Of a stretch of DNA of 64,000 bases, positions 297-33,613 are shown piece by piece (the first letter of the stretch is position 1; every line of letters starts with the position of its first letter). The stretch is taken from assembly GCA_965202585.1 (NCBI GenBank), contig OZ241829.1, forward strand, positions 29,760,001 to 29,824,000. Reading direction: 5' to 3'. Both the position numbers and the translations under genes were made by a program. A model generated the notes under the pieces. The model was not told where the DNA came from, made no database searches, and saw nothing but the letters and a program-made list of their open reading frames with translations. The DNA is from Thalia democratica. Its lineage: Eukaryota.

Positions 297-3200
297 TTTG
301 GTAACATATGACTTCAGTATCTGGATTGAGCTCGCCGTCATTACAAGTTCTAGTATCGTCCCCGATCAGTGTGTAGTCTTCATCGCATACAAAAGTTACA
401 GTTTCTGAAGAAATATAAACCGTCCTACCGTCTTTAGTATCACCGTTCGCAGGCTTGGTTATTGTGCACTCTGTTTATAACAGTACTTTGGTTTTAAAGT
501 TTGTAGCAAACAATAATGCTAAAAAGCTATAGTTTGTTTATAAGTATTTTATATATTTATTTGATAATTTTACAAGCCATTATTAAATTTTTGAATCTTT
601 AAGGCTTTAACTTTATGTATAACAAAAGATTATGTTTATAAAACTAAAAAAACTATACTAAAATGAAAGTTGTTGCTTGTTGATAATATAGTTCAAAACT
701 TGGGAAACTTGGTAATTTTTACATATTGCAAATCATTTTCGTTATTTTGATTTATATATGTAATGACAATTATAAACAGGTACTCATTAAGAAATTTAAG
801 TTTCCTCTCAAACTTACCTCTTGGACCAATCGTAGGCATTAAGAAAAAGAACGGCAAATAAAAAAACACAAGCACAGATATTGAACTATCCAAGGAAACA
901 GAGATAAACCTCAAACGAACCTGGTATGCACTGCACGGCCGGATGCCATTTGCCGTCCACGCCGCAAGTGGAAGCACTCGAGCTCAGCCTGTGCTTTTCT
1001 TCGCAGGTCACCACAGCTTGGGTGCCGTTGAGGTAGACTCCTTCGCCCCGTTCGTTTTCGATCGCATAAGAAGACGATCTCGAGTTTTCGGGAGGAGAAA
1101 AGTCGTCGCATTCTGTGATAATTACTTGCGCTTTGTACTTTGTTTTCGAGTAGCTAGTTATTTAAAAGTTTCCCTGCTGTTATCTGTACAATTGTGTTTT
1201 GTTCCAAAAAAGGTAGCTCGGTCGAAATGAATAAGGAGTTTGAAAAGTTCAATGAACACACTAATAAAACTATTATTGATTATTTTTTAACTGGTAACAC
1301 AAAATTGTTCTAAACATTCAGACAAAAACTTGTTGACGAAAGCTTCAAACTATGAAACTGTGATCAAAACAATTTTTTTTTACGTTTCAAGCAGATTGGG
1401 AAAGTTGTTGGTTCCCATCTAGCGCCTCTCTCGCACCCGAACTCAACATTGGAAACGTCGTCCAAATGGTAGCCTTCGAAGCAGGCGTAGTTCACTTTTG
1501 AAGATTTAATATCGCCGTTGTCCAGCCTTATTGTCTCTATAGCCGTTACTATCGAATTGTGAACATGTGGGGGATTTTCGCAAACTGAAATAAATTAATT
1601 GTTTAACTTAATCGTGCTTTATGAGTATCTTTACAACTATTTATGATTTATTCAGAAAAGTATATATCCTTTTTTTAAAATAATTCTGATTTATCAAGCA
1701 CAGAATTACAACATAAGCTACGAAAACTCCCCCGACACAGCTGTATAAAATTTTTAACTACAACACCAAATTTAAGCTAGTAAGTTTGGGAACGGGTCAA
1801 AATTGCACGAAGATACTTTTCCACGAAGATAAATTGGCACGAGCAGATAAAATTGCACGATGACAATTTTGCATGGAGGGTCATATTTGCGAGCGAGTGA
1901 AAAAAATATACATATATAAAACAGAAAAATAAAAACTAAAAGATAAATTAATAAAACAATAAAAAAAGTAACATACCTAGGGTAAGGGTTAAGGTTAACT
2001 GTGATAGTAAAAGAAAAAAAAAATATTAAAGTAAAAAGCAATAAATAAAAATAAAATTATTAAAAAGAAAAATAAGTTACCGACCGAGGGTAAGGGTTAG
2101 GGGTACAGTGAATGTAAAAAAAAATAAATAAAAATAAAAATTCAATACTTGCAAAATTGTCTACACGTGCAAAATTTTCTTCGTGCAAAAGTGTCTTCGT
2201 GCAATTTTGTGCCCTCGTGCAATTTTGTACGCTCGCGCAAAATGATGATTATTTACAATAATGATACCACGTACAATTATGACAGCTACCGAGTTAGTTT
2301 TTTATATTATTGAAGTAACAATTAAACACAATCCAACGCCACTTTGTTTTCACTGCGCTCTAAAAACTACTAGTGTTGAAAGATACCGGGCACGCATTTC
2401 GGCGCGGAAGCGAATCCCCAGGTCTCGTCTCTCTCACAGGTGAGCTTCTTTGGCTGGCCATGTACTAAGCTGTAATCAGAAATGCATTGGTAAGTGACTT
2501 CGGTGCCGGTCCACAGTTCACCTTCAACGTAGCTGGATGAAACGCTCCAATCCACATTTTCGTCTTTTGGCGGGCTTTCACACTCTGGCATTGTTATAAC
2601 GTTTGTAAATAGCTGATTGAAAACTCAACAACTATTGAAACTGATTGATAAGCTACATAACAGTTACTTTATTAGTGTCTTAAACCTTTTCATCAAAACT
2701 TTGCTATTATAAACGTAGATTGATATAAAAAATAAAAACTCAATTGGTAATAAGTTTTACTTTTTTTTGATCAGGCAGTGTGCAAAAAACAGATAGTTTG
2801 TAAATCATACCTTTTATGCAAATAGGGTCTTCTGTCATATTCCAATTTCCATCTGAGCACACAAACGCAGCGGTTTCATCACCGCCTTTGACAAAACTAT
2901 AGTCGTCGTCACAAGCGTATTTGATGACATCCCCACTTAAGTAACGTTCTTTTCTTGCTCTCTTCAAGTCAATGGTTGTTGAATTGTATGGCTTCACAGG
3001 ATTCGAACACTCTAAAATAAAAAACTTGGTGAAATAAAATAATCAGTTAAATGAAAGGCCTATATTTAAATCAAACTAGTGAATTAAGTCGTATTTTGGT
3101 ATAAGACATTATAAGAAAGTTTAAGACGTTTTGGGTGTTTTCTAAATAAGCAAAGATTAAGATTGTTTCATCAATAAGCTGTATAAACTTTGTAGACACT

Positions 3201-6200
3201 TTGGTTCAATGTTCTTGGTGTAGTTCCATTCACCATTCGATTGACAAACAAATTTCGAAGTTTCAGTTGAAAGTTCATATTCTCCATTACACGTAAATGA
3301 AATTTCATCCCGATAAAGAAAGTGATCGGGTCTTTTAGTGCGAGAGTCAACATTTCCATTTAGTAAGCTTGGTTGAGGACATTCTAAAAAGTTTTTAGTA
3401 TACTTTTACTGAAATTAGTTTTTGTAATCTAGTTATGATGTAAATGTGAAAAATATTATCTCAAGCCTACATTAGATAAAAAAATTGTACAAAAGTTTTA
3501 AAACTAGCAAAAATGGTTAGGAACTAAAGTTATGTAAGTGTAGTAATTTTATTTATTGTATATAAACTATAAATATATATATACTTGGTAGCAAACAAAT
3601 CAAATATTAAAACATATTAGTTTTAGTAAATATTAGTAAAAATTAGTCTGAATAAAAGTTTTAAGTGTGCTAACAGTTTAAAAAAGCAATCGTCTGTACA
3701 TAAAACGTGTTCTAGTACAAAAAAAGAAAAAACAACGTTTTATTTAAAAAAAAACATGGTTTTAGTGGATACAAAGTACAAATTAATTTAAATAATACAA
3801 CTGAAATTTGTTTAGTCTTTTTCAATAATTTAAGATCATAGGTGGGTCACCTTGCTTTATACAAATCCATCTTAATTTATGGGGTTTTGTCTTAGCTTTT
3901 AGATACTTTTTACCGCATAACAAAACTCAAGTTAACGTTTGAAATGAAACAAATTGACGTCGGTGAATTCAATAGGCTTCTTTATGTAAAGTACAAACTT
4001 AAAAGGTGGAAAAAACTGTTTGACTGAAGTTATACCTTCTTCTTAAATGTGAAACTAATCGTAAACAAGTATAAATAGTTTTTTTTATAGTTATAGATAC
4101 AAATAAATAAACTTTTCAACTTGCTTTATTAAGGTAAACGTTTTATAGACTATCAATAAGTTAAAACGCTCAAAAAATTTTAAGTGACGTTCTACGATAT
4201 AGACTTTATAATACTTAAGTAGTATTTGAATAACTCAATCATTAATTGCTAGTCTCGATCTCGCAGCTTTATTTTTGTAAACTACTATTCTGTATACCAA
4301 TACTTAAAATTAGTAAGCTCTTTATTGTTATACGTTGTTAACTCCGTTTATTGACATGTTTTTATTTATTTATTTATATAATACTTTTAATATAAGATCT
4401 TTTACGTTCATTGATGTTTTTATATTCCAACAAATGTACTTTGTTAAGATTTTTAAAAAGAAAAGATCCTTCTTTACTGTTATTCTAAATTTTATTACCT
4501 CAACATATGATGTAGTTGTTATATTCTACAAAAAAATGAACCATAGTTCAAACTTTAAGCTTATATATAAGAGAAGGTGTTGTTTTCGTAACAACAATGT
4601 CTTTGATTCTGAACGGCCACAACTCCAACAACCAAAAACACTTGAGGACTTTCTAACACGGAAAAATCCGTTAACATCTTTTTATAACAATTCACCTTTG
4701 ACGCATTCTCCAACGGAGTTGTCCAAACCGCTCTCGATGTCACAGTTTATGATCGGGTTTTCCGAATCGTAGGTGAACTCTGGATCGCACTCATACTCCA
4801 CTTGCACGTCGATGGAGTGCGTCGCGTTTATCGGTTTAGAATTTCTCACGATTTTTCTCCCATTTTTAATTTCATCAGGCAGAGCTTCGCAGCCTACGAC
4901 AAAACAGGTCATTTCAGTGTTTACATCATAATAGTACGAAACAAACAGTTACAGTTGTACTAACAGAAACGATAAAAACTGACGGAAATAAAATGTTTTT
5001 TGCTAAAACTAAAAAATAAACTTTCATCAAAGACGGCGGCAGTTTGTGGTTTGAAAGAATTAGTAATTATTTATTTTATTTTATTTGAGGTATAAACAAA
5101 ATAAAGATTACACATGTTTCAGACTTGAAGCTTTTTGTTTCAAGTTTTCGTCAGACTAAGTTTATTATACTTATAAACTCCGTATAAGTAAGACTTGAAG
5201 TATAAAGCTTTAAGTCTGAAACATGTGTAAATTATTGTTTTGTTTATACAAGAAACATATGTTTCTCTATAAAGCGCATAGAGCTACAAACTAAAACAAA
5301 ACAACATGACATATACTTAACCACATTCAAATATACCTTACTTTAGTATTCGGGCACGTTTTAACCCTTTTAGAAAAGTTTACTTTCCAACCGAAAACTT
5401 ACTTCTCGCGCACGATCCGACGGCACCGACCGGATCCGACGTCCACACTCCGGTGTCTCCGCACACTTTGCCAACGAAATTAGCAGGCGTCATGGTCAAG
5501 TTGTCGCGGCAAGTGTAGCTGACTCGGGTGCCGGGGTAGTAGGAGCCCTCGTGCACCCATGTTACCACGCGGTCAGCGTTTTCCACGACTGGAATCGCAT
5601 CGGCCATACACTGGTGAACTGCAAAATTTGGTTTTTGAATAGGGTCGTAGGTGCTGAGAAAAGAATATTAGTGAACAGAACAAAAAAATGTAAATTTGTT
5701 TTTAATCTGTACTGTAGACAACCTGATTAAAAAAATTCTATTCCGTCAGTCATCTTGTAAAATACACAATATTTCTCAAAGTCAAACCACGATTTAGATA
5801 AGTTTTAATTTAATACCAATTTAGGTTCCTTATACTTATTTAACGTTTACAAGCTTGAAAACCAGAGAAGCAGTCTCCAAGATCGCCTTGCCAAGAACCA
5901 TCTTCAGTGCACTGGATCGTGTCATCGCCTTCTGGTTTCATCTCGTACCCGTTATCGCAAAGGTAAGTGGCAACAACACCAACAGTATGTTGAGTGTCTG
6001 ACAGGCTTTCAGATATGGAATAATCTGCATTCGTCCTATTTTCAGGTTTGCCGCAGTCTGAAATTCAGTAACGTAAAACAATATACATCAGGAACATTGT
6101 TTCGTACTATATATTATATAAAGCCGGGTTTAGATATTGGGTAAAAAGTAAAAACTAACGTTTTTTTTTGGACTTCAAAAACATTTTATTACTACAAACA

Positions 6201-9200
6201 AATAGACCTAAATGAAAACAAAACTTACACTGTATAAAACTAAACTAAACTGTTTACTACAACTAATATTGTAGTTTGATAATATGGTCTTGTTTTTTAA
6301 GAGCTTTTAAGATTCTAGTTATAAAATTTTATGATTTAGTTTTAAAATACGTATTTTATCAAAATAAATATACCAAAAAAAAGATTCAACGCTAAAAGGC
6401 CGTTTGTAGGATTATTACGACAAGTAATTACATCATGGCGAAGTGCATGGTGTGTTTATAATCAAAAAACTACCGTGTTTAAACAAAACTACTTTAACTA
6501 ATCAAGTTCCACGGTTTTAAACTAAATGGTAGTAGTTTTAAACTTTAAGTAAAACTGATTGTGTCGTGATGCTTATTATAATAACAGTACATACTATACA
6601 TACAATACATACATTTTTCAAATATTTTAATTATTAAATAGTCTGCGGTCTCACTTACGTTATCAGTTACAATATTTAAAAACTGTTGGTTTTATATAAA
6701 ACTTTTGCATACTTAATTTTCTCGCTTTCCAAACTAGCTATCAATTCACTTACGCCTCACACACTCTGGAAGCGAAGGCTCAAACTGCCCGTTGATGCAG
6801 TTCAACACAGCCGTCGAGTCCGGATGGATCACGAATCTGTTGTTGCACGAATATTCAACCTGGAAAACTGCTTTCGCTGGACCGGTTTCAGTGTCTATCA
6901 TCTCGTACAAAGGAGTGGTGAAGTATCCATTTTTGATTTCTTCCGGATCGCCGCAATCTTAAAGTGAAGCAGTGATGGTTTATATATGAAAATAAAGTTT
7001 AGTTAGCTAAAACGTTTTGAACTTTTTTAGTGTTGTATGAAAACACAGCTTAATAAAACTTAGTTTACCCAACTTTTGTTTGTATCAACAGTAGTAAGTG
7101 TAGGTGGGGAAGTTTTTTAATAGTAAACTAGCTTGAGCTTGTACACAGATACACTTTACCTGTTATTGACGCGTTTGATAGGTTTGCAGTAGGTGAAACG
7201 ATTAAGATGTAGCATTTTAATACTTAAAACTATGACAAACGTTAAAGTTCTATACTACCTTACGATGAGGTTTTATCAAGTAAGTTAACCCAAAAAGTTC
7301 TTAAATGCTTAATATAATATTAAAAAACGTTGAAATTCAGTAAAGTCTTTACGTTTACTTTAGAATAAGCTGGCTTTAAATTTACTTATTTTCAAAACCG
7401 TTATTTATTTGTTTTTGTTGAAAGTCTGGAGTCAGAGAAATTCAGAAAATTAAAAACATTGTGTACTAAATTTTAGCTACATTAATATATTAATGCACTA
7501 TTCGGTATGTCTTTCAATTTTTGCATGACATAAAGTATTTTTTTACTTTTATTCAGTCATCAACAAAAATAAATATAGAATAAAAGAGCTATACTATTAT
7601 TAACAACTATCTTTAATTTTTTGGTAGTTTTTAAGTAGTTGTGTCACAAAAATGTGTATTCCATAAAACTAAAAGCTTTTGATGTTACAACACAAACCTA
7701 AAAACTGACTTTTAGCAATAATGTAACAAGGACTTTTCAAAAGTCCGTTCTTACAGCTCAACTAAGTAAGATGACTTAGGTACCGTAGCTTAAAAGTATT
7801 CATTGTTAAGAAACAAATTCTAACATTTAACACAATGAGGCGGGGTAATGTCCCATTCTCCATTTTGCAAACACTCAGCAGAGTTTTTATTTGAGCTGCT
7901 GATAACATAGTTGTCGCTGCAAGTGAACTTGACAATCGTACCGCTGTACTGGTTGTCGCTTTCCACACCATTTACTTTCATAACTTCGAGACTCAAGCCC
8001 TCAGTAGCAATGATGTTTTTACATTCTGGAACAATTTTTAATATTTATGTTTGTTTTATTGTAAATTTTACTTTGCAGTTTTTTAGGTTGTAAAGAATAC
8101 GCATCTAAAAAAATAAAACAACTTTATAAACAGTTAAGTTTAAATAAATCAATTAAAGGACAGCTACCTATTTTAATTTTTGCCAAATTTAGCAAATTAG
8201 TTGTTGATTTTTATTTGTAGAAATAAGCCTAACTTTATTACTTATATGTCTTCATTGGGTTTGCGCATTGAAACTTCTAAAACATACATTTTTACTAAAA
8301 ATTTTGGGTATAATAAAACAACATAAATGCTTTGAGATCCACAAAGATTCAAATTTCATTTATTAAAACAAGTTTTTATGAAAAATTAATTAGTTACCTT
8401 TTAAGCAATCAAAGCCACTTTTCTTCCAAGACCCTTCGTTCGTGCAGTAATGAGTGTTATCAGCAGACTCGGGTACCAGCGTGTACGGTGCTGCGCAATC
8501 GTAAGACACTTTGATTTCGACCTCCTCATCACTCCCATACACAGTCAGCTTGTCGAGGACAGTTTTCAATGTGTTTGGCACAACCTGGGACGCACCGCAG
8601 TCTGTGAAGGACAGTTAGTTTTAAACCAGAGCTTACTTGAAGACAAGGTCTGCAGTCCGTTTTATAAAGTCTAATTTTTCAATTTAAGTTTAAGTAATGT
8701 AGAAATTAAGATGTAAACATCGGCGAAGTAGCGGCACAAAGTTCACCTGGGTAGCAGACGAATGGACTCCACGAGCCGTCAACGCCACAAGTCGAGCTTG
8801 AAGTGCTGGTGACAAAGTTGTTGGTGCAGGCGTAGCTCACTTCCGTGCCGTTCAGGAAAACGCCCGACCTTTCGTTTTTGTATTCGTACGCGTGAGTTCC
8901 GTCGGAGTTGTTGACACTCGGCACATCATCACATTCTTGGATAACAAAATTTTAATACTATTTTTGATTTTTTAATCAATTTTAATTCTAAATAATTAAT
9001 GAAAAAATCATCACAGCTCAAAGTTAATAACGTTTACTTTCGAGTACCTTTTATGCAGAAAAGTTTTGTCTTGGTCACCCATTTTGCTCCCAACTCACAC
9101 ACATACGTTCCATTAGCAAACTCATCGCTGAAATGGTAACCTTCTGTGCAACTGTACTCAACAACACTGTCGATTACGCTTCCGTTTGCTAGCCTTGTAG

Positions 9201-12200
9201 AACTTATGAGAGTCCAATTCGCGTTTTTTAGGACTGGTGGTACCAGGCAAACTGCAAAGTTTACAAAACTGTGTTGTATGTTTGAAATCATAGATAAGTG
9301 TGTATCCTTTAAAGCGTTTTATGAGTTTTTAAGATGTATACAGTTAGTAAACTACTAACAACTAAAATTTTAAAATTAATGTATAAAAGCTAAGAAAAAT
9401 AACTTATTACTTTTAGATGAATGTAATGAGTTGAATAAGCATACTTCAAGCTTTATTACAACTGACTGAAAAATTATAAATTCATCTTGTACAAAACTGC
9501 GCATTATTTATAAGCAATGCACAAAGCACCATCAAAGAAAACACCAACTTGGAGCACATTGAGGAGCGCGGCCGAAGTCCCAATTTCCGTCACCGCCGCA
9601 AGTCAGTTGCTCGGGTTCGCCCCATTTGAGACTGTGGGAGGGATCGCAAGTGTAGCTCACCGTTGTTCCGCTCCAAAACTCGCCGTTCACGTGGCTGAAG
9701 GTTGTGTGCCAAGTCACCTTGCTTCCGTCGTATGGCTGAGGGCACTCTGTATCGGGCAGCGAGTAATAAGCTAGTGTTTAAAGTAGAAGTAGTACAATTG
9801 TTATGCGTATTTCATATGTAATTATAATATAGTACTATTCTAAACTTAAACTTTATTCAAATGTGAATTATACTTATTATTCTCAAAAAAGAATGCATTC
9901 TAGAAAACGGTTTTCAATTGAAAAGTTTAGTTTTTACAGCTTATTCAATAGTTTATGCTGCTGTAGTTCAAAAACCAAAAATGCAAAAATGTCATTTTAC
10001 TTGTAATGCACGTAGGAGCCACAGAGATGTCCCAGCCACCTTCTGAGCACTCATAAGTGTAGTCGGCCGAGCTACCACCACTGAAAGTGTAGTTCTCGAT
10101 GCAAGAATACCTGTAAGCGTCGCCTTCGAGGTAAATGTCTTCACGAGCCTGACGCTCAGGTACGACGGTTCCGTATGGTATGGTTTCGGGGCTCGGGCAA
10201 GCTTAATTGAAAGCAAGGTTGAAAGAAGTGACATTTTTTACAAGGCTTTTGAAGTAATAAGTAAGTTGTGGTAAAAATATTGATTTTTAAACATTGAAGT
10301 TCTCGAAAATTTTAAGTTTTTTGTTGAACACTTTGTACAAAAGAAACACAATACATACCGTTTTGAAGTAAAATTTAGTACTTTCGTTATAAATAAAAAA
10401 AATTAAATGTATTGAGAATTGTAAAGTAAAGATGTTTATAAAGTTAACTTTTTAATAAATGTGGGCTTTAAGATAAATTCTAATTTTTTCGCAACGTCAT
10501 AAAATTTTTATTCAATTAAACGTGCACAAATGCACTTTCAAGTAATACTGTTACTAAATAAAAACAAGTTAACAACAGTATGACAAAAAAGTTTTATATA
10601 AAACAGTTCCGTAACATTTTAGCTTCATACACAAAATCAGCTCTTTTAAGTTGTACGAGATAATTTGTTGTGAAAACAATTTCATATATGAATCAAAGTT
10701 TTAATTAAAAGCCTGAAATTTAAAAGTTTTAAGATCAGGTTCCGTTTAGCATCTCAATTATATATAAAGATTTAAACCGTTGAGACACGCGGGTACGGAG
10801 GAGTTGGTTATTCCGTTTTCCTTGCACTCAACAATGGAAAGACGAGGATAATTCATGTAATAGCCTTCTTCGCAAGAAAATGTTGACAAAGTCCCGGGTA
10901 CATGGTTTGTTGTGTCATCTACTATTGGGCGAGTGTCTATTATTAGACCAGGCCTCGAGACGATGTTTAGGCATCCTGTAGAAAACATTTTCGGTTTTAT
11001 AAGTTTGATATATGCTTGAAAGTTAACCGTGACTTAAAATAACGCATACTAGTCTTGAAAAGCTTTTGCGAAACCATTTAGTCCCATACGAAACACTTAT
11101 TTTAGTTTTTTTCACCGTAATTGAACTGAAGTTGCAGAAATAGTTGTTTTTTAATTTTATTCAAAGTTGGTAAACTTAGTATTTAAAGTAAACTTCTATA
11201 GAAATGTTTAACTTATAGTTTTTCGTGTATTATTAGTAAACTTCAATGCTTTACCTTCACTCAAAGTTTAACTTTTAAATAAGTTTTAAACATTTTTCTT
11301 TATTTTTAATAAAATAGTAAACAAGTAAAACGTAATTTGAAGTTATTATTTACTAAAAGCCTGTGTACTTACATATAGAAAACATAACTTTTTTACTAAG
11401 ATAAGTTCTTGTATTTATACTGTTGCGAAAAAAAAGTATCCTTAAAAAATTCCAAAACTTTATAATAGGTTTTAAATGTTATGAAATAAAATATACTGTA
11501 AACATTTTTTACTCATCAAAACTTTAAATTTTTTTATAGCTGAATTAATTTTGAAAAGTAATTTTACAAGTGAAAAAGCGCTCATAACTTACGTTTAATG
11601 CATTGAACTTTATCAAAAGTCCACGATGAATTAAAATGGCAAGTAGCTTCTACAGAAGCTTCTTTGGTATGCACATTGTAGTAACCTTCTTCACACCTGA
11701 TTTCAACAGCGGATATGAATCGAGCCGACCAAATACCGTCAAAATATTTAGTTGCTTTTATGATAGAGTTTGGAAAGTATAACGGTCCACAAACTTCAAA
11801 AGTTTAGTAAACAAAGTGAGATTTTATTTTTAACATATTTGTTAGATAGTTGCCTTAAAATATGTTGATTGATGATTGATTTAAACGATTAGTTTATTCT
11901 CTATATATGCATATTAATAGCTTCAAGTTTATTTTTCAGCAAACTTTAAACAAAAAATCTCAAGCTCAGCAAAATTTGCAAACCTGGAAAGCATAAAACT
12001 TTCGGAGACCATTTCCCATTGGTGCCGCATGTGGTCTCGTTGCCTACTTGCTCGTACTTATCATTGCAAACGTACCGAACGACTGACCCAGTTGCCACTC
12101 GCAAGTCAGGACTTGTTGTTACGACGTCCAAAGACACAGGTTGGTAAGGCGCACTGTTTTCTACAGTCGGTATTTCGTCGCATACTGTTGTGCAAAAAAA

Positions 12201-13848
12201 ATATAAGGTTTTGACCTAAAAGGCTTGATATTGAATTTTAGTTATAGACGATTTCAGTTTCGTCTTGTTTCATTAAAAACTGTGTTAATTGTTAGAGCTA
12301 AAAACTTAAGATAAAACGCAGTGACTTACGAATTACACTGCTTATGATAGTTATTAAATAGTGTCTTTAGTTTGGTAGTATGTTTTTTGTTTACAGCTTT
12401 GTAAAAGTTTTATTAAAGAGTATAAAAGCTTCAGTTTTTAATTTTAAGACTATAGTTAGTTGTGAAGGTTTAAAACTGTTAAATTCTGATTACGTAAGCT
12501 ATATAAAAGCTAAAGCAGTTGTGATTTTCACCTTATTGATAAAATGTTTAATTCTAAAAAAAAACAAATAAACTTATCCAACTAAAACCATTCATAGATT
12601 TCTAAAACAGTGAATGGCTGAGCATAAGGAAACTCTATCTTTTTTATTTATCTCTAAAAACATAACTTCTAAATTGACAACTTTGAAAATTGTTTAAACT
12701 ACTTTTTTTCATAGAGCGAAACTTTCAAACTATTATGAAAAGCATCAGTGTTCACAACTGACATTTGAAGCACTCAGGACGAGCTTCCTCGGCCCAGCCT
12801 TCCTCGTATGTGCACGTCAAGGAAGGACTCGCTCCCTCCTTCATCGAGTATCCGCGGTGGCAGAAGTAGTTCACTTGCATCATCAGCACGATCCTGTCGT
12901 CAGACAACGTGTATTCCCCTCTCCGTCCGTCGGCGTTCGGTACATGAGGCGGAACCAAGCAAGCTAGAGATTTGTTTGTTTGAAAATATCACACTCAAAA
13001 CCGCAACAAAACGTGTAAGCAGGGAAAGTTGACGAACTTTGAACGCACCAAGGTGCGGTCTCTATGTTCCACGTTCCGTCTTGCCGACACTTGCGAGTGC
13101 TGACTTCGCCTTTGGCCAGGGAGAACTTGTCGTTGCACGTGTACACCACCCGCATGCCGGTCCAAAAAAAGTATTTTTCAAACAGGTATTCGGTCGTCCA
13201 CGTGGAATAGTCTCCGTCGGGTGGCTTTGTGCATCCTTGCAATTATTATTTTTTTATTAAAAACAGGTAAATACTATAATTTACATACATGCAAATGATA
13301 AGAAAATGGGCTAAAAGTTAACCTCTAATGTTCCCGTCGGGACATATTGGTTTTCTTTTCCAGCCGTCATCTCCACACTCAACAGTACCAATGAAATCAT
13401 AAGGCACTGAATATTTACACTTGTATTTCACAACATCACCGATATCATAGCTTGATTTAATTTGGCCGGTGTAGTTGCCGTTTGTTAGCGGAGGAGGATC
13501 CGTGCAATCTGGTGTGTTTGTGTTAAGCAAGTGAAATCCTTGAACATAACAGCTTTATAGCATGAGCAGAACAATTTTAAATGTTACATCTTAAAATAGA
13601 TAGTGCAAAAGTCAATCAAAAGTATGTTTTTAAAAATCTAAAAGTAAAGAAGTACCGACATGAGATGCATTTCGGGTAACTTTTTCCGGAATCCCAAGTA
13701 AAGTTTCCGTTTTCGTTGCACACGACATACTCGGATGAGTTTGGATGGATCCTAAACCCCTGATCACACTCCAGCATGAATTTAGAGCCGTATATTGGTT
13801 CTGGTGGACCGACAAACAATCCATGTTCCAACTTTGGTGGTTCGCAGA
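297..13848 (-). CDS. Array of 23 single-exon Sushi/CCP (SCR) domains
   Basis: Symmetric phase-1 exons, each encoding a C..C..(W)..C module: 13660-13848, 13323-13508, 13038-13235, 12763-12963, 11984-12184, 11593-11793, 10778-10975, 10001-10201, 9549-9746, 9048-9251, 8747-8935, 8398-8601, 7825-8025, 6754-6957, 5863-6057, 5403-5618, 4696-4893, 3189-3383, 2811-3011, 2387-2584, 1384-1584, 921-1112, 297-470. All lengths are multiples of 3 (174-216 nt). Confidence 0.93.
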
Positions 13849-16800
13849 CTGATGATAAAACAATTTTCAGTAAGAAAAAAATAGTGCTTAATCGACTTTT
13901 TAAAGTGCTGTTTCTTATTAGATGCAAGTAAGAAAGTATGGTTTGTAAATAAAATGTTAAAGATATAGTTCAAAACCTTATTTTTCAAGAAAAAAAACGT
14001 ATCTAATGTTTTACTTATTTTTAAATTGAAGTAACGTTTAAGTTTATAAAATTCATCAGTTTTTATTTTTTACATGTGCGTGAGACTTATTTCTGTTTAA
14101 AAAGTTTAAGTTATTTTTTTCTTAAGATTGCAGATAGGTCAGAATACTTTAGAGAAGTCCTCTGGTGAAAACAATGCTAGAAATGTTTTTATACAAACTG
14201 GATTTTATTCATAAGTTATTATCTGAATTATAAAGCATTTCTTTAAAGTTTTAAACATCTTTAAAATGTTGAATATATGTTTAAAGTTGCACAGATATAT
14301 AGTGGTAAAAAGTACTCTCTTGGAATTTTTTACCATCAAAAAACATTAAAAAAACTATTTTTCAGTATAAAAATTGTTTTTTTAGTACTTAATTTCTGTA
14401 CTTGTAAATATTTTCCATGCAGTTTTTTTTAATTTAAGTTTTGAAGACCTACGATTTTTAATTGAAACTTTTATAAAGAATTTAAAAAAATAATTTAGGA
14501 ATTATTATATAAAATATGTCTAGTATTACTTTTTTTTTTTAAGTAACTTTGCTATTAATTTTAAGTTTTACAGAAGCCATAAAATCTAACATTTTCAAAA
14601 CATCACAGATCAAAATGAAAACAACCTTTTAAAAATAAGCACATTTAGTATGTTTTAACAAAATTAGAAGGAAATAAATACCTTTATGATAATAAGATTG
14701 AAAGTATTTTATAAAAAATTAAAACTATTTTTAAGGTTAATTTTTTTAATTAAACAAATTTTACACAGCTATTCTTTTTACTGCAGTTTTGTCCTGTATA
14801 CAAGTTATATTTAATTCATTGTGACAATAAACATCAAATATCTTAACTTACGCATAATGAACTGCCAGACTATACTGACTACATTGCAAGACGTGCACTG
14901 CATTTTTACTTTTCTTGTTCTGCAAATTATTATTTTTAAGTTTTTGTTTAACCTTTAGAATTTGAATTAAAATAACATTTAATGAAAAAGTTTAGAATTT
15001 TAGTTTTACTGAAAAATAAGTGAGTGAACAAATGGGTTTATTTTTCATAAGCAATCAAATAGTTTCTACTTCTCCTCAAAAAAATCTATACATCTTTATA
15101 TCGATTTAACTAAGATTTAAATGGCTTATAAGCAATATTTTCAAAAAACTTTAAGTTTTTTATTGTTATTTTGTAATTTTACTGAATCATGTGCTTTGTT
15201 AATCTTGTCAACTGATTGTCACACTAAATTTATCAGGTGTAACTAATTTTAAATAACTATTAAACTCTTCTTACATGTAAACTTTGCATAAACATTTTTA
15301 AAGTTGTAAATAAGTCCTATTAATCAAATATTACTCATTATGGTATATCTTAAAAACTTTGGTAAAACTATCTTTGGATTAACTTATCTTTAAAACCGTT
15401 TCATATCATTATACGTAAAACCTTATGCTATTAAGGTGCACAAGTTGTTTTTGTTTAAAAAAGCTATAACTTACTTTTTTGCAGCTTAGAAATTTTTTGA
15501 ATTCACTAACTTTACAACTGCTAACTATTAAAACTTTGAAAATTTGTGTTGTTTACTAAAAGCTTACATCTAGATGCAGTTTTTCTAAAGTTACGTCATA
15601 CAAAAACTAGGAGTACTACACTCGATCTTTTTCAAGTTATTTTAGTTTAAAACTAGCTACACAAAATATTATTATCTTAATTATAATATAAACTCAGGGT
15701 TCAACAGTTTTATTTTGTTTAATGTGCCAATTTTCCGAGAAAAAGTTGCTCGTGGGCCAAAAGCAAAAAGTCTTCTGCAGGCTGCAACTATTTCAATAAA
15801 TGTTGTAGTAATAAAAAAAAGTTATTTTAAACTAAAGATGCTATAAAACTACAATGACAAAGGACCAAGTGCCCAACGAATTATGCAATTAATTTGTAGC
15901 CATTGTAACTTGATTTATTAATTCCTAATTTGTTTTAAAACTGTTATCGAGGGATTACTTTAGTTGGTTAAGTTCTCATTTTAGAAAGACTGATTTATAA
16001 AAAGAAAATGGTTAATTATATGTCTAACAAAAAAATAAATTGCCTGTTTGAAATAATGAAATTAACTTCTTAGTGTTCTTGTGAAAAATAATAAAAATGT
16101 TTGTATCCACCTGCTCTTCAATATAATTAGCATTCAAATAGTTTGAAAATGTAAATAACGTGTTAATAAGGAATTCAAATCCTTCTCTAATGCAGTGCTT
16201 TACTTTCGCTTAGTTTATCTATTAATAAAATAATAAAAAGACTTCAATTATTATGATATGTAAACTAGTCTAGTTTCTAAAATAATTAACAATGATTAGA
16301 ATTAAAAATAGTTTTGCTGAAGTTATATTTTGCACATAACTATATATTATTCATTTTAACAAAATATAGTTCCCACAGAACTTTTTATATAAGTTGAAAT
16401 GACTCTTATTGAATAAAAGCATATGTTTTATTTTGAAAAATAAAACTATCAAAGTATTCAAATTTATACACGCTTTTTTTTTTACAAGTAAAAAGTTTTC
16501 AACAAAGGTCAACACTTTTCAGTCTAACACATTAAATCAACGTAAGCGTTAGGATTCTACTCTTTTAAAAAATATTGTAGGCTAAAACAAATTATAAAAA
16601 TGGTATTAATTTTCTTCCTGAAAAGTAAAGTTTAAAAGATAGTACTTCATAAAAGTTATTGAGTTAAACTGTTTCAAAACTATATAGTTTTGTTCTTAAA
16701 GTCTTGTTGTTAAAGCTTTGTACACAAGTAAAATAAAAACATCTATGTTATTAAGTTTTATCACAGACGGTATATTACTAATATTGATTTTTATTATTTA

Positions 16801-19800
16801 CTTTTTAAACTTTGTAAAAAAAAATTGATTCTTAAACTAAAAACAAAAAGTGGTTTGAATTGTATTTTGTGTAACAAATCTGAGTGTTTATATATTGCTT
16901 GCAATTTGAGTTTGATTGTGATTCTAATTTCTATCAAAAAAAAAAATCCAAGGTTAAAAAAAAAAGAAAAAATAAGTTTTAAAAACAAACTTTTATAAAA
17001 TTTTGTATCTATTTAAGTCAATAACAGTTGTTTCAAATAAATTAATATTAGTTGAAAAAAAAAAACAATACGGAAAAAGCGGCCAATTAGTATTAGAAAA
17101 AGTACATTTTGATAAATTTCATGATTCATTTTTTGTCAATAAAATTCGGTATGTATTAGTTTAAAATACTTAAGGAAGGCTGAAAGCTTTTTTTATGAAA
17201 GGATTGTTTCTGTGTCTTCGCACAAAATCCGGACGTTTTCTTTCTGTGAAAAAATTAAAAAATCGTTATTAACTCACGTCTTTAAACAAGCACAAATTCA
17301 GTCTGACCGTTGTATTCCAGATCACCAGTGAACTGCACGTCGTTTTGGTACTGGTGGTTGAAGTACTCGAATCTTTCGAGCGTGAACTCGTCGGCCGCCA
17401 CAGTTTCCTTCTTGTATTCTTTGAACGACAGCTCGAACTTTGCCTTCACTCCGCTCGGGTTGTAAACTCCTTAAAAATACACGTGAGACGTGGAGGTATA
17501 AAGAAATGCAGTGACGAGCTTTTACAAAGTTCTTAAAATAAAATGCAGCAGGACACCAATAACGTATCTGCTTTAAGAGATATTAATCTAAAAAATGAGT
17601 TGGGTCAAAAAATTATAAAAAAGCTATGATACTGTTTAAACGAACAAAAAACTAATCTTAAAGTTATAAAGATTTTTATTATTGTGTTAGTGTATAATAA
17701 AACTGTAAATTACTTATTAAACACAAAAAACTTGATGTGCGTGGCAAAAATTAGTTCAGTTTAGTTTATTTAGGTTTTATAAATTAATTTTAAATTAGTT
17801 CAAATAAAAAACTACTATTAAAAGAAAAAGTCTAGTAACTCTGAAATTAGCTTGAATAGACAATTTTTTTTAATCAAAAGTAAGTAAATATAAGCTGTTA
17901 TAACTAATATTACTTTTATAATTATAATTAAACTTTTAAGAACTAAAATGTTCTCAAAACTGTAAGGTACGCATTTCACGTAAAGTACGCACTTTTAACT
18001 GGTTTCTTGGTGCGTACCCTACCAATGTCATTATATTTTTATTTTAGATAAATACAACCATGAGCTTTGCGACTAGTTTTTTTTCAAAATTGGTATCAAC
18101 TGTTTCTAGACTTCTCGTGAAACCAACCGAACTTGATGTAAGGAACTCTCCCTTGCGCGTTCGCCCCGATAATAACCGGCAACTGATAATCGAGGTAAGA
18201 AGATTGCAGCTTGCCGTTAACTTTCAACTTCAGTAAACCGTTCCACGTTCGGATACCGGGGTCTCCAGTGCGACCGAGACGCTCCATTTCCTAGTTTAAC
18301 TTTTAGCTATCATCTTAATGGTTGATGATAAACTTTAAACATTTTAATCTTGCTTCTAGCTTAAGCTACTAGTATATAATTTCTCGTTAATTAAAAACTC
18401 TATAGACTTTTATTTTATTTTGTTAAAAAACAGGTCTAAAGTTCTTGTATAACACTTCCAATAATATTTTAATACAATTTATTGCTTGTTTTTCATTTAA
18501 GTGACTGCACCTGAAATATCTAATACTTTTTTATATTTCTAAGCTAAATAAAATAAGTAAAAAAAAATCAAAAAACTTTATCTGTAAGGAGACCGTACTC
18601 GCCCCAATTTATAATCCACTCAAATTCAGTCCATTCCTGCTCTTCGAGAACATCTAGCGGAATTTCGTGAAGAACAATCGCCTAAAAACAGTTAAAAATA
18701 ATAAGAAAATATCTCGTTAGCGTTTTATGTTGAAAATAAAGTTTAAAACTAAGTTGAATTTCTTTTCGTTAGAACTTTTAAAAAAAACTTTACTCTAAAT
18801 GGAAACAAGTCTTTCAATTTTAAATTTGCCCCAGATAACACCATTTTTACACAGCAAACCCTTTTTTTTTGGTAGCAAAATGTTTATGTAAGCTTAATTT
18901 TTAGTATCATATTCAAAAAAAAAAGTAAAAAAAACAACGTGTTGTTCGGCCCGACCGTCTTCAACGCACACAACTTTTTTCATGCCACTCATTCTGCACT
19001 TTCCTTCAGTTTTGAAGTACCTCTCGTCCGATCTTGCTGTCACTGTAAGCTTGCCTGCAAGAGCAGTTTGTTGTAATTTAATTTTTACACGCTAGCCTAA
19101 AACAATAAAAATAAATTGTTTACCAAAAAATTAAGCAGTGGTATGCTGTTCTATATAATTGTACACTTTTAAAAATGTTTCAAAAATCACATTATTACTA
19201 GTTTCAGCATCAAAACATTTTCGTAATTTACCTTTCATTAAGTTGTTTTGTAACAAAATGTATATTCTCTTGTTTTTTAAATGACCGCCTAGGGGCGTTA
19301 GATGATTGTTTATCAAATCACATAATAAAACTTTAATAGTTTTTGTTTTTACGCTCAGTTAGCCATAAGACCGTGCGGAAGGCACACCAAATTTAAGACT
19401 TTGAGACACTAATTGAACTTAAGAACTTTTTAATGATATTCATTTTATAAGAACTTTATATTTAATTGTATTATTTTATTGCATTGTGCTTAGTTTAGTC
19501 ATCGTTGTGCATGAAGTACGACATATATTAAGACTCTGTATTACAAGTAAAACCTATTTTTGTATTTAAGATTGTGACATTCAGACAGTTTTAGAACATT
19601 ATTAAGAACATTTTTAGTTGTAGAATTTTGTGTCTACTTGTTCTTTTTATTTTCCCAGTTGTATTCTACTGATAGAGTAGCTGCTCTATCACTTCTACTT
19701 TCTAGTTTTCATATTAATATTACTTTTTCAATAAACTCACTTCATTAAAGAAACTATACATATTAAGTTTATTACATATTTAATAGTTACTAAGTTAAAC

Positions 19801-22800
19801 CTAATGAGTAAGGTAAATTCAGTAAAAGCCTTAAGAGCTAATCACTCAAAGCGTTCAGCTCAAAAAAGGGGACTTCCCCCAATTAAAAAAAGTTCCTACC
19901 ACTGGCCTAAGGCTACAGTTTTACAAACAGAGTCATAGTTTATTTTGTATATAACTTCGTACACGTAAAAATCTAAAAATTGCAAACTAATTTCTATATT
20001 ACATAAAACTTTAAACAACTAACTCTGGTTCCTGTCGTAATGAACTGAAAGAAGGGGGTGTCCTCCTCTCTGAAAGCTTATTCGCTCCCCTCCCGCTTCG
20101 AAACCTGAACGCGTAAATTAATAATCAAATTAACCTGACTAACTTTTGTAGTTTCCTTAAAAGTTAACGTTTAGTGTTTAATTTAGTATTAAAATTAATA
20201 AACAGTTTTATACACTATAACTAAGATAAATTAAACTTTTGTAAATAGACTTGAACAATAAAGCAATCATCACAACAAAATATCAAAGAAAAAAAATCAC
20301 CAACCGGCCGCGTGCTCGCACGGGAAATGGGAGCAGCCCCTGAACAGCTCCTCGTTGGTCAGCCGTATCGGAACGGGGTCTTCCCCCACGGTGATGACGC
20401 GAGGGTCGGGCGAGTTGTGCCACTGAGTGATCATCACCCGCCGCATGGCCGCTCCGGCTTCACCCGATTGGACGAGGTCTCTCAGTTTCATCTTGTACTT
20501 GTACACGTGGCTGGCGTGCCGCGTCATCGGCTCGTTGGCCGCCGGGCACAGCGTTTGGAGGAGGGGCGGCATGACCGGGCCTGTGTGACGTAATAACGCT
20601 TTGGGTGATAATGTGTGACGTAATAACGCTTGGGGTGATATTGTGTGACGTAAAATTTGTGTTGTAAGAATGGGTGATGTCTGATTAACAAACGAGTTTG
20701 ATAAAATTTTGTTAACTTTAAATGACAGTGAAAATCTATATTGAAGATTGCTAATTTTTTTGTAACTGGTAGCAGGTATGTTAAACATTGATTTTTTCAT
20801 AATATTTATTCAATACTTTTCTTGAAGTTTTGGAACTATTTGTTAGAATTTTAAGCAGTTTATTAAACTTATATCTTTTAATCATTTTTGCAATAAATCC
20901 AGTGAAAAATTTGATGAAATAGTTGTGAATAAAAACGTTTAGAGATGAGATTGTAAAAGTATAACGACATTTTTTTATACAAAAATTTTTCTAAACTTTA
21001 GCTTTTAAAACAGTTACAGCTAATGAAAAGTACATTAAAATAAAACTTAGATAAACACTTTAATATTTAAAATTATTTCTCTATATCAATGGTCTTCAAG
21101 GCGTGCACATTTAGGTTAATTTGCTTTATATAAAAAAGTTACAATGGTTAAAAAAAAATTCAAATGACGTTTTTTGTTTTTTTCTATGGGAAAAAGTTAA
21201 TGATAACACAAACTAACAGTTTTTAGCACGTTATTTATATATTCTATCTCATAAAACCAAAATAAATTCTTGTTCTTGATAGCAACTTACATTTTAATAG
21301 TCTAGTTTGCAAATAATTTATTTTTCAGTAATTTAGTGTGCACAGTGTTTGAAAATATTAAAAACCAATGCTCTAGAGTCATTAAATGTTTACTTGACAA
21401 CAACAAAAATTAAAAAGGTAAAATTGTTTTAAGGTATTAATAATAAATTGAGAAGGTTTATTTAAAAGTTTTTAAACATTCAGTTTATAGTAGACGTTTT
21501 CTGATACTGTCGAAGTATCTGTTGAAAATAAAGTATACAATTTTAAAACAAAAAATACTTTTTATAAGGAAATTGTTGTTTATATCATTGTTAGTGACGT
21601 TTTCTTTGAAATATTTTTCAGTTACAAAACACGTGCTGATCTCTATCCTGGACTTTTCATCTTTTTTATTATTATCCAAGTTGTCGTATACAAACCTAAA
21701 ATAAATATGAAACTTTGCTTTTTTTACTCTAGTCGTTTAGCAGTCAAAAACCGCTTACGTTTTTATTGAATTTTATATATCAACAAAACAAGTTTAAGCA
21801 CAATAACTTTTTAAACAACTTTAAAATATTTGTATGATACCACGTTAGTTAATTTTAAAAAATTTTGGTTCTAAAACCTTTGAACATTTAATAGCTGTAA
21901 AAATGTCTACTCTTTTAAAGAGAAACAACATGAACAGCAACCAGTGAATTAAAGTTTTTACACACTACTACAATAGTTCTAGACATACTAATATAAACTA
22001 AGTTGAAAATAGTTATAATGTTTACAATAAGTTTTTGTTTTTAGTTTTATAGGCTAAAAATGACAAAACTTGCACTTATAATCTATTCAGGTATAAGATA
22101 TTTAAAACTAATGACGAAGTACCTGTACTGATAGGAAGGTTCACTATTTTCATTTTCGGGAAAATACTTTTCAATGTAAAATTTTGTCTTTTTACTGTTT
22201 GAAATTTTCAGTAAAACAAAATTACCTGGAAGAACCTGTTCTGTAAGTACATTAAAATTTTTTTTTTGAAGAAACGTTCTTAGCTTTTTTGTTTTTTACG
22301 CCAAGTAATAAGTACACTTTATTTACAATCAGTAACATAATTTTTGATAAAAGTTTTAAAATGCAAGAATTGTAAAACATTTCTATAACTACATACGAAA
22401 ATCCTACAAAGTTATCTCTTAGTTTCTGATTTACTTCAAACCTTCCCTGACCAGTTTCAAGAACGGTCTCGATTTCGGCCACTTGTTGCAAGTGAAATTC
22501 GATGAGGCCGCCTTGAGACCGGTGCAGTCCCATATTTCACCAGATTTAGTTTTATTTCTCAACAGTTTAATACCTGTTTGCAAGGATTAGTAGATTAACT
22601 TTAAAAGAAAGGTAAAAAAAAACTTAAGTCAAATTAAAAGCGATCCTAGCTGTTTTTGTTTTAGAAAGATGGCTACTGTACGACTGGATAACCGATAACT
22701 GTGGTGTGAAACTCGATAACTAAAAGGTTTCTTCATACACCAGGTGCTTAAACCAGACTTTTTGGACGCTTTTTTTTTATCGTTTTATAACCAATATATA

Positions 22801-24931
22801 CACACTGCCGGAGGGGATGTTCAACATCACTGGTTAAAAATATATACTACGGTCATCTAAAATGAATACTGTAACAAATTAAACCTTATTTATAAATAAA
22901 ATTTTTATATGTAAACAAAGTTGAGAACCTTAACAAAGTATTTAACATTAAAAGAGTTTAGTTTGGGTTTTTGACGTAAAGCAAGTTTTATAAATATTTA
23001 ATTTGTGTTTTACTCGTAAACAAAAGTATTACTTAAGTTTAAAAACCTTTTTATTAAAGTTTGTGATATACTCATACTGTGATTAAGCTACTCTTACTTC
23101 TAAAGTAATATGCAATGGTCTTTTGTACAACTCTCTTCCTGAAACTTTGTTAACAAATGTAAAAAATAGTAACAGTTACCACATAAAATTTTTGCATGCA
23201 AAACAAACAAACTGACTGCAACTCAACCCATCTCCTTGGAAACCAGGGTTGCACTTACACTTGTAATACTCCTTATTCTCGTAGTTGTATTTCAAGCAGT
23301 AAGCATCTGCGTGACAAAACTGACAAACGTCTTTTTCAAATCCTGTATTTTAACAAATTCCTACGTGATGTCATTTTGATTATAACTTATTTTTGTACAG
23401 ACAACAGATGTATTTTATTTCGAAAATAAAGTTAAATTGACAATAGTTGTATTGAAGCATTAATTCTTTTTTTATTGTAACTTACTTTTTTGACAACATG
23501 TTTTACCAAATCTAAAAACAGTAACGAGTATAAATTTCTGGTTTAAGATGTTGACATTTCAGAAAACATGAGTTATAATTTAGTAATTGTTCAGTAGCTT
23601 TGTAAATTTTAACACTAAACACCTGTATAATAATAAATATATAAAAAATACACAATTTGTGTTACATTAATGTGCTACGTAAACAATTATTGTAAAGTTA
23701 TTACAAGTTTAAATTAATTGTTGTGCAAAGTTGTCGTAAACATATTAACTGAACTAACTTAGTTTTTTTAAATTTTATTTCGTAAATGTATGTTGTTTAA
23801 GGTTTATGTAAATTATGCAGTAATACTATAAAACTTATTATGCTTAGATAAATATAATACACAAAAAAACAAAAAAATACTAGTTATTTTAAATCTTTTT
23901 GTTTCGTCATCTAAGCAAAAGCCATCGACTTCATAGGTTTCACACTTGTCTTCCCCACCACCTAAAACATAATTCAAATAAAAACAACAAAAAGAGCAAT
24001 AACAAATGGCTGCTAAAGTAGAGATAAAACTATTTAAAACTCTAAAATGTGATTCTATACTTTTTTACGGTCTTAACTAAAGACTTAAAAAGTTTTTAAA
24101 AACATAAAAAATAATTCTTTCAATATCCCTGGTGGCGTCAAATCTAGTTAAATTAAAAGACTGTCAGTTATTAATCCTATGTGCAGTTTGTTTTTGTTTA
24201 CCATCAAATTAAAAAAATAATTTTATTGTTAGTTTCAATTTTTTTTTCAATACGGTATTAAACTACAAGATAAATAATTGAATTATATTTGTAGTGCGAT
24301 AATAAAGACATTTTTTTAAATTTTGGTACTAAAACAACTAGTTTTGAACATTAAAACTTTTAACAAAAATATAAAAGTCATTGATTTAATATATAATAAA
24401 AAACAATTTATATATTTTCCTAAATAGTATTTTAAATTAATCTTATAAATAAAGAAAGCAGAAAAATATTACAAGTTTATATAATTTATAAATATAATAA
24501 TAAAACATAAATAAACTATTTTTTGTCATTTTTTTAAAAATAAACTGTAAATGTACATATAGCTATGGTTATATAATATTACATCAATTTTAATAAAAAT
24601 GTTGATAAAATATATATTTGAATTTGATTAAAACTTTAATCAACGTTTATTACATTAGCTGACACTGATTCTCCTAAAAAGATTTTCTGAGCCTTTTAAT
24701 TAACTTCTTTAATGTTTGAGTTTTAGTTTTCTGATACCAAAAATACTTTTAAAAGTTTTGATATCAGCAAAGAAACTCTACACTATAATTAAAAGTTTAT
24801 GCTTAAATAAAACTAATCTAAATTCAAAAGGAAAACTTTTCCACTAAAAAAATCTGATGAAAATAAATTCACTCACCATTTGTTTTTGAAAACAATAAAC
24901 ATAAGAACAAAAGTGAAAAGAAAAAATTCAT
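297..24931 (-). CDS. Large secreted/extracellular modular protein: signal peptide - EGF - heparin lyase I (PL13)-like domain - >=23 Sushi/CCP domains (34 exons in window; 3' end lies beyond window start)
   Basis: Hand-spliced GT-AG exons with consistent phases: 24877-24931, 23881-23961, 23217-23306, 22435-22573, 21559-21695, 20305-20580, 20024-20104, 18939-19054, 18577-18681, 18128-18290, 17308-17469, then 23 phase-1/1 CCP exons from 13848 down to 297. Continuous ORF of about 5950 nt. The 17308 to 13848 junction is inferred (phase-compatible, no separate start or signal exon seen in between). Confidence 0.8.
1790..2245. repeat. Intronic element with inverted subterminal arrays (aaaattgcacga / tcgtgcaatttt) around a ggtaagggtt(ag) core
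   Basis: About 5 copies of an (aa)ttgcacga-like unit on the left, about 5 inverted copies on the right; the A-rich centre has two gggtaagggtt(a) motifs. Confidence 0.7.
17308..22573 (-). CDS. Heparin lyase I / polysaccharide lyase family 13-like catalytic domain (8 exons)
   Basis: Spliced translation carries, in the correct order, motifs matching recalled bacterial heparinase I: WDCTG (WVAVG), KSRIEIS (KGRTELS), MITQWHNSPDPRVI (IFAQWHGAPSRTLV), FQRGGHP (VEQGGYP), KLTVTARSD (YFYIKANSD), LHEIPL..EWTEFEWIINWGEYG (AYKMPF..CWITFDVAIDWTKYG), VIIGAN (ILIGRN), PYIKFGVY (YYFKFGIY). The 3' boundary of exon 21559-21695 is uncertain (alternative phase-1 donor right after EIST). Confidence 0.85.
20582..20653. 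repeat. 30-bp minisatellite, about 2.4 copies, at the 3' end of an intron
   Basis: Unit tgtgtgacgtaataacgctt(t/g)gggtgata(a/t) at 20582, 20612 and partially at 20642. Confidence 0.9.
22683..22778 (+). repeat. ~100-bp dispersed repeat, copy 1 of 3
   Basis: Shares gtg..tg..a..cgataac.aaaaggttt..t...caccagg....a.acca.a..ttt.g.gc(g)tttttt with 37101-37202 and 37519-37622. Confidence 0.6.
23217..23961 (-). CDS. Exons 2-3: EGF-like domain
   Basis: Exons 23881-23961 and 23217-23306 translate to GGEDKCETYEVDGFCLDDETKRFKITNAYCLKYNYENKEYYKCKCNPGFQGDGLSC: six Cys with the EGF C-terminal signature CxCxxGFxGDGxxC. Confidence 0.85.
24877..24931 (-). CDS. Exon 1: N-terminal signal peptide (MNFFFSLLFLCLLFSKTN-G)
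   Basis: ATG at 24931 (in-frame upstream ATG at 24943), hydrophobic core, consensus GTGAGT donor in phase 1 matching the next exon. Confidence 0.8.

Positions 24932-27988: not shown

Positions 27989-33613
<5,625 letters not shown>

Follow-up and report, generated by a model that had tools for sequence, protein, structure and literature searches.

Does a domain related to heparin lyase I cap a giant rod of complement control protein (CCP, or Sushi) domains in a single animal protein, or do two genes merely follow one another along the chromosome? The PL13 family, to which heparin lyase I belongs, is regarded as a set of bacterial tools for eating host glycosaminoglycans (GAGs). The question is raised by a 64,000-nt stretch of the Thalia democratica genome (GCA_965202585.1, OZ241829.1, 29,760,001–29,824,000; hereafter the window, whose positions are used throughout), where the minus strand carries every feature: a lyase-like gene, a gap, and a CCP array. 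A first-pass annotation had read these as one lyase–CCP protein of more than 2000 aa. From the sequence we instead favor, at about even confidence, two co-oriented neighboring genes, one for a PL13-like, presumably secreted EGF protein and a separate giant CCP gene. Co-orientation and phase compatibility, two parts of the single-protein proposal, both held, whereas the fusion itself came out somewhat disfavored in view of the lyase gene’s own stop, a nearer acceptor, a candidate start exon at 14903, and the 3459-nt intron that would be needed.

Structurally, the lyase-like open reading frame (ORF) comprises 11 exons with GT–AG borders that, read from 17100–25100 and joined by script, give 507 aa without interruption. 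The window is AT-rich (~22–38% GC) and contains no runs of N. The exon anatomy and coordinates of the first-pass annotation (signal peptide, EGF, lyase exons, and 23 phase-1 CCP exons) proved correct when re-derived, and those of the lyase-like gene are as follows.

24931–24877, minus strand: exon 1, ATG and signal peptide MNFFFSLLFLCLLFSKTN, ending at a phase-1 donor, GTGAGT.
23961–23881, minus strand: exon 2, phase 1-1, 27 aa with Cys, GGGEDKCETYEVDGFCLDDETKRFKIT; required for ORF continuity, without a family match.
23342–23217, minus strand: exon 3, EGF domain, phase 1-1 (Pfam EGF_3, 29.2 bits, E 1.1e-6).
22573–22442, minus strand: exon 4, phase 1-1, the N-terminal lead-in before the lyase-like domain.
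22240–22123, minus strand: exon 5, where the jelly-roll homology begins (EQVLPGNFVLL...) in both the profile and the hhalign alignments.
21695–21559, minus strand: exon 6, with the motif SRIEIS resembling PL13 GRAE(F/L)S, Arg and Glu retained.
20580–20305, minus strand: exon 7, 66% GC, with a conserved Cys-Pro and QWHNSPDPR (equivalents of Gln149 and His151); the thumb expected next is absent.
19054–18939, minus strand: exon 8, KLTVTARSDERYF, resembling PL13 FYIKANSDRKW; ARSDE motif.
18681–18577, minus strand: exon 9, EWTEFEWIINWGEYG, resembling CWVTF..IDWT.YG; W..F...W..YG motif.
18290–18101, minus strand: exon 10, PYIKFGWFH with the Y.KFG motif; Lys353 retained, and Phe (TTT) at the position of the catalytic Tyr357.
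17469–17282, minus strand: exon 11, where the PL13 homology ends (VYNPSG), followed by an unmatched tail and TAA at 17284–17282.

A scan of the whole window returned no CCP or lyase exons besides those listed above and those of the array downstream.

13848–297, minus strand: CCP/Sushi array of 23 single-exon domains, all phase 1-1, 1515 aa in total, running off the start of the window.

The array is regular throughout. The cysteine pattern of the CCP domain is found in 23/23 exons; the three exons tested against Pfam Sushi (PF00084) all scored above the gathering score (28.8–30.1 bits, E ~1e-6). Every exon is a multiple of three in length, with a phase-1 AG acceptor just ahead of Cys1 and, 1–7 codons past Cys4, a phase-1 GT donor; the acceptor is 2 nt from the Cys1 codon in 22 of the exons and 8 nt from it in CCP16. 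No exon shows decay over the 13.5 kb, and since all 23 are intact the array must be translated from some upstream start. CCP9-10-11 and CCP20-21-22 are 43, 42, and 48% identical (8747–9746 versus 921–2584, minus strand), which suggests that the array grew by an old block duplication with a period of 11 CCPs. Architecturally, RCA/factor H-type genes (factor H, CR1) and giant Sushi proteins such as SVEP1 likewise devote one phase 1-1 exon to each CCP, whereas the Thalia array differs from them in lying directly downstream of a PL13-like gene; the likeness meant here is an architectural one.

Whether the lyase-like gene is spliced into this array depends on how its last exon ends. Homology to PL13 stops at VYNPSGVKAK, after which 51 aa lead to the TAA at 17284–17282; the distance from the end of bacterial homology to the donor at 17308 is ~43 aa, longer than the ~30-aa linker previously estimated. 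Two phase-1 donors flank the stop, namely G/GTCAGA at 17308/17307 (GT 17307–17306), 8 codons ahead of it, and C/GTGAGT at 17278/17277, 6 nt past it and 30 nt beyond the first. Scored with a position matrix built from the locus’s 33 donors (real donors: median 6.5 bits, range 2.5–11.2), they reach 7.9 and 8.2 bits, respectively, values attained by only 3.8% and 2.6% of the GTs in coding exons. The first of them had been put forward as compatible with CCP1, and it is indeed in phase and above the locus median. Two routes lead from it. Joined to CCP1 at 13848 (acceptor score 4.5), it would require an intron of 3459 nt, and the junction, LEYN-V-CEPPKLE, reads through. Joined to the acceptor at 17245–17244 (cacAG, score 5.9), it would need an intron of 64 nt and open a short terminal exon.

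17243–17172, minus strand: possible alternative last exon, overlapping a GC island and preceded by the acceptor scored 5.9; its 24-codon frame would end the protein in a basic tail, ERKRPDFVRRHRNNPFIKKAFSLP.

For comparison, the introns of the CCP array range from 74 and 87 nt (the two shortest) to 1312 nt, so that the 3459-nt gap, taken as an intron, would exceed the longest of the locus more than 2.6-fold.

These routes bear directly on the single-gene reading, in which the 17308 donor is spliced to CCP1 and a signal peptide-EGF-lyase-like-[CCP]n protein of more than 2000 aa is made, either as main product or as one isoform next to a form that keeps the stop or has the basic tail. We regard it as a minority possibility. 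The phase fits and the junction is open, the donor outscores the locus median and other exons of the locus also use gtcagt-type donors, a strong phase-1 GTGAGT follows 30 nt further on as if exon 11 were, or had once been, internal, and the 23 intact CCP exons call for an upstream start. Phase compatibility is nevertheless a cheap argument: phase 1 is the rule for every CCP exon and for the majority of signal exons, and with a CCP array chance alone would be expected to produce it. Weighing on the other side are the stop 8 codons past the donor, the length of the intron, the nearer and better acceptor 64 nt away, an independent candidate start exon at 14903, and the finding that exon 7 matched neither a fused protein nor any animal protein among 1.8 billion representatives. 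Under a fusion, four features would have to be coincidences: the stop of the lyase gene itself, the basic frame behind the near acceptor, the exon at 14903, and the intron length. Were the two parts nonetheless joined, the result would be a giant secreted form (>2000 aa, probably >3000) carrying a horizontally acquired PL13-type head behind an EGF domain and before a rod of dozens of CCPs, in which the two donors around the stop could switch between a short soluble form and the giant one; we consider such a form unlikely.

The donor past the stop admits a further, very improbable explanation, namely that the fusion was broken recently: the GTGAGT at 17278/17277 would once have led on to the CCP exons, the TAA that precedes it by two codons being a recent nonsense mutation, a polymorphism, or an assembly error. 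GTRAGT is found 44 times on the minus strand of the window, which puts at ~1% the chance that a copy would fall in phase and no more than 10 nt from the stop; the CCP exons show no decay. Their integrity over 13.5 kb argues, conversely, for ongoing translation, and two sequencing runs contain all sampled words of exon 11, the stop being not certainly among them. The sequencing runs that match the locus hold 88% of the mostly non-coding interval 13500–17500 and are therefore probably DNA.

If the CCP array is a gene of its own, it needs a start. The first-pass annotation reported that the 3.46 kb gap shows no separate exon of this kind, yet one candidate is present there.

14903–14852, minus strand: candidate first coding exon of a separate CCP gene, MQCTSCNVVSIVWQFIM, a hydrophobic 17 aa ending at a phase-1 donor, GTAAGT.

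The scan that returned it looked for an ATG opening a frame of 12 codons or more, in which some 9-aa window had seven or more hydrophobic residues, with a phase-1 GT as donor. Without a donor filter it gave three matches on the minus strand of the gap, about the chance rate; when the donor was restricted to GTRAGT, just two loci remained across both strands of the window (128 kb), the signal exon of the lyase-like gene and the one at 14903. The exon ends 1003 nt upstream of CCP1 and lies on a GC island (44% GC in a gap of 24% GC). Spliced from 14852 to 13848, it would read ...FIM-L-CEPPKLE. In factor H-type genes, too, a short phase-1 signal exon directly precedes CCP1. Searches for repeats and RNA genes gave no match to the exon, which is unique sequence, and found neither in the gap as a whole. 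An AG acceptor-like site stands 19 nt upstream of the ATG, and could serve as a spliced-leader acceptor if the host is a tunicate.

Two other start-exon candidates were rejected, one at 17129–17072 (donor score −4.0; chance rate) and one at 16133–16067 (chance rate). The 14903 exon was likewise rejected as an internal exon of a fused gene: read from the upstream AG it spans ~70 nt, is not a multiple of three, and meets a stop when read in phase 1. The gap contains a second GC island (15705–15809, minus strand, 47% GC), without an ORF, RNA family, or repeat match.

A third alternative, also improbable though a little less remote than a recent break, would have the two parts share their 5’ exons. 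Here the ancestor would have been a gene for signal peptide-EGF-[CCP]n, one intron of which received the lyase module, and its transcripts would either run from signal peptide through EGF and lyase to the stop, or skip the lyase and splice a donor of exons 1–4 (e.g., 23217) to CCP1. Exons 1–4 all end in phase 1, each being frame-compatible with 13848, and the arrangement would account both for the co-orientation and for why the gap offers no convincing signal peptide; EGF plus Sushi is, moreover, a common architecture among animals. The scheme is purely combinatorial, requires a 9.4 kb intron, and becomes unnecessary because a candidate start exon exists at 14903.

We return to two genes as the preferred reading. 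Gene 1 would consist of the 11 exons and 507 aa described above, a signal peptide and EGF followed by a distant, intron-bearing PL13 homolog (PF14099 superfamily), and would end either at its own stop or, via the 17308 donor and the 64-nt intron, in the short basic tail. Gene 2 would encode a giant CCP protein, its signal-type exon (ATG at 14903) being spliced in phase 1 to CCP1. Pointing to separate genes are the in-frame stop, the 3459-nt gap, the 14903 exon on its GC island, and the acceptor of the basic tail, which at 5.9 outscores that of CCP1 at 4.5. The arrangement would cover the 17308 donor and the stop, the basic frame reached through the near acceptor, the exon at 14903, and the length of the gap. 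Several observations weigh against it. With a good phase-1 donor on either side of the stop, exon 11 is probably spliced onward. The 14903 peptide is a weak design for a signal peptide, with no small residues at −1/−3 and a hydrophobic core interrupted by Gln and Ser, and the exon-side context of its donor is poor. In addition, the GTRAGT filter was tightened after the 14903 candidate had already been seen. Two genes thus leave the GTGAGT after the stop and the poor-looking signal peptide as coincidences.

How firmly, then, does the domain behind the EGF belong to PL13? Single lyase exons gave no matches to Pfam or the PDB, falling below Pfam thresholds. A phmmer search with exon 7 against 1.8 billion representatives recovered no true relatives beyond two ORFs, each the size of an exon and located on a marine metagenome contig (~1 kb or less) from Tara Oceans, and matched neither the window’s own protein nor an annotated animal protein. 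Both fragments conserve HVYKY..Q(W/F)HxSPDPR, which implies that other planktonic relatives possess this gene family. Three long bacterial matches to exon 7 were discarded as spurious, being repeat noise from repetitive giants; an atlas search with the same exon was uninformative (IBR-type noise, score 0.49), and a further search for homologous proteins with exon 7 yielded none. A profile combining exon 7 with the two Tara Oceans fragments found no relatives in bacterial genomes or JGI metagenomes, so that no close bacterial donor was found there. Against the PDB, the four top matches of this profile were all heparin lyase I (9grw, 3imn, 3ilr, 3ikw), aligned on QWHxxPD, at E values of only 0.08–0.09.

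Through a 51-aa stretch from the PDB match we retrieved 80 Bacteroidota heparinase I loci and built a hidden Markov model (HMM) from 74 of them; a bacterial comparator ORF scored 98.8 bits on PF14099. Against the spliced 507-aa protein the 74-enzyme model reached 22.4 bits, in colinear pieces. The global hhalign alignment spanned the whole 392-residue enzyme and took in model residues 89–456 (probability 96%, E 1.7e-9, 22% identity), and the local alignment covered 280 columns (P 2e-4), whereas the reversed sequence and five shuffles reached at most 23, over short stretches only. A full heparin lyase I is accordingly colinear with the domain that follows the EGF. The homology to PL13 is real yet distant, its distance being judged from the failure of single exons to reach Pfam thresholds and from the PDB E values. 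The identification as heparin lyase in the first-pass annotation hence stands as homology to heparin lyase I in both the hhalign and HMM comparisons, but at the remove that ~22% identity implies.

Compared with Bacteroides thetaiotaomicron BT4675 (PDB 3ikw, 3ilr, 3imn), the likeness resides in the motifs GRAE.S/SRIEIS, Cys-Pro, QWHxxPD, ANSDR/ARSDE, W.F...W..YG, and Y.KFG. Unlike bacterial heparin lyase I, the Thalia gene has 10 spliceosomal introns and a eukaryotic signal peptide, and in its protein the domain is preceded by EGF and followed by a 51-aa tail. A literature search returned no paper that pairs heparin lyase with animals or tunicates or that describes an animal PL13, and none of the eight groups in a 2026 survey of horizontally acquired Ciona genes is a lyase.

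Functionally, the residues of the active site give a mixed picture. The equivalents of Gln149 and His151 are retained in QWH at model residues 269–271, a feature that is invariant in the 74 bacterial sequences and appears as Q(W/F)H in both Tara fragments. Also retained are the Arg and Glu of GRAE.S, the Cys-Pro, Tyr351 and Lys353 of Y.KFG, and the residues equivalent to Arg88 and Lys116 (B. xylanisolvens numbering). On the other hand, Tyr357, which is Tyr in 74/74 bacterial sequences, aligns without gaps to Phe439 (KFGWF, codon TTT). The position of Arg161 (B. xylanisolvens numbering) is Pro here, with an Arg shifted one position later. The thumb (~50 aa; template residues 198–247) is without counterpart, as residues 198–208 and 211–247 align to gaps. 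Han et al. in 2009 reportedly identified Tyr357 as the general acid and are said to have described a basic thumb that grips heparin. Substrate contacts of heparin lyase I include this Tyr as well as the Lys and His (PMC7575093, PMC10097318).

Because the catalytic Tyr has become Phe and the heparin-binding thumb is absent, the GAG-cleaving head of the earlier proposal is doubtful, even though Gln149, His151, and Lys353 are kept. We posit that this lyase-like copy is probably inactive, and that an active lyase is no likelier than a domain that binds glycans or an enzyme whose chemistry or substrate has changed. More probably than working as a true heparinase, the domain binds an anionic uronate polysaccharide, or cleaves it weakly or differently.

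What remains would be a rare, remodeled PL13-type domain in a secreted animal EGF protein, beside a giant CCP gene. A foreign domain that has acquired introns, a signal peptide, and an EGF neighbor, and has apparently been remodeled (thumb gone, Phe at the acid Tyr), is well suited to the study of how enzymes of foreign origin become domesticated, and of whether this one was turned into a glycan-binding module. If the fusion to the CCPs were true, the domain architecture would be unprecedented; if false, a PL13-like gene adjoins an ordinary giant CCP gene.

Base composition varies markedly among the exons of the locus. Third codon positions of exon 7 are very GC-rich, whereas exons 5 and 6 are at 28–29% GC and the introns at ~25%; several CCP exons are GC-rich as well (e.g., 9549–9746 and 12763–13235). 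GC-biased gene conversion is possibly the cause. Just before the exon 7 acceptor, the intron (20581–20685, minus strand) contains ~2.3 tandem copies of a ~30-nt unit (ttacgtcacaca.tatcaccc.aagcgtta), and the acceptor itself, cacacAG, lies in the last copy. Upstream of the lyase-like gene, at ~28000–33000 on the minus strand, the window also contains a cytochrome P450 gene, of which an ORF at 31844–32191 (minus strand) matches Pfam p450 (E 1.5e-7) and another at 29752–30138 (minus strand) resembles a further P450 exon.

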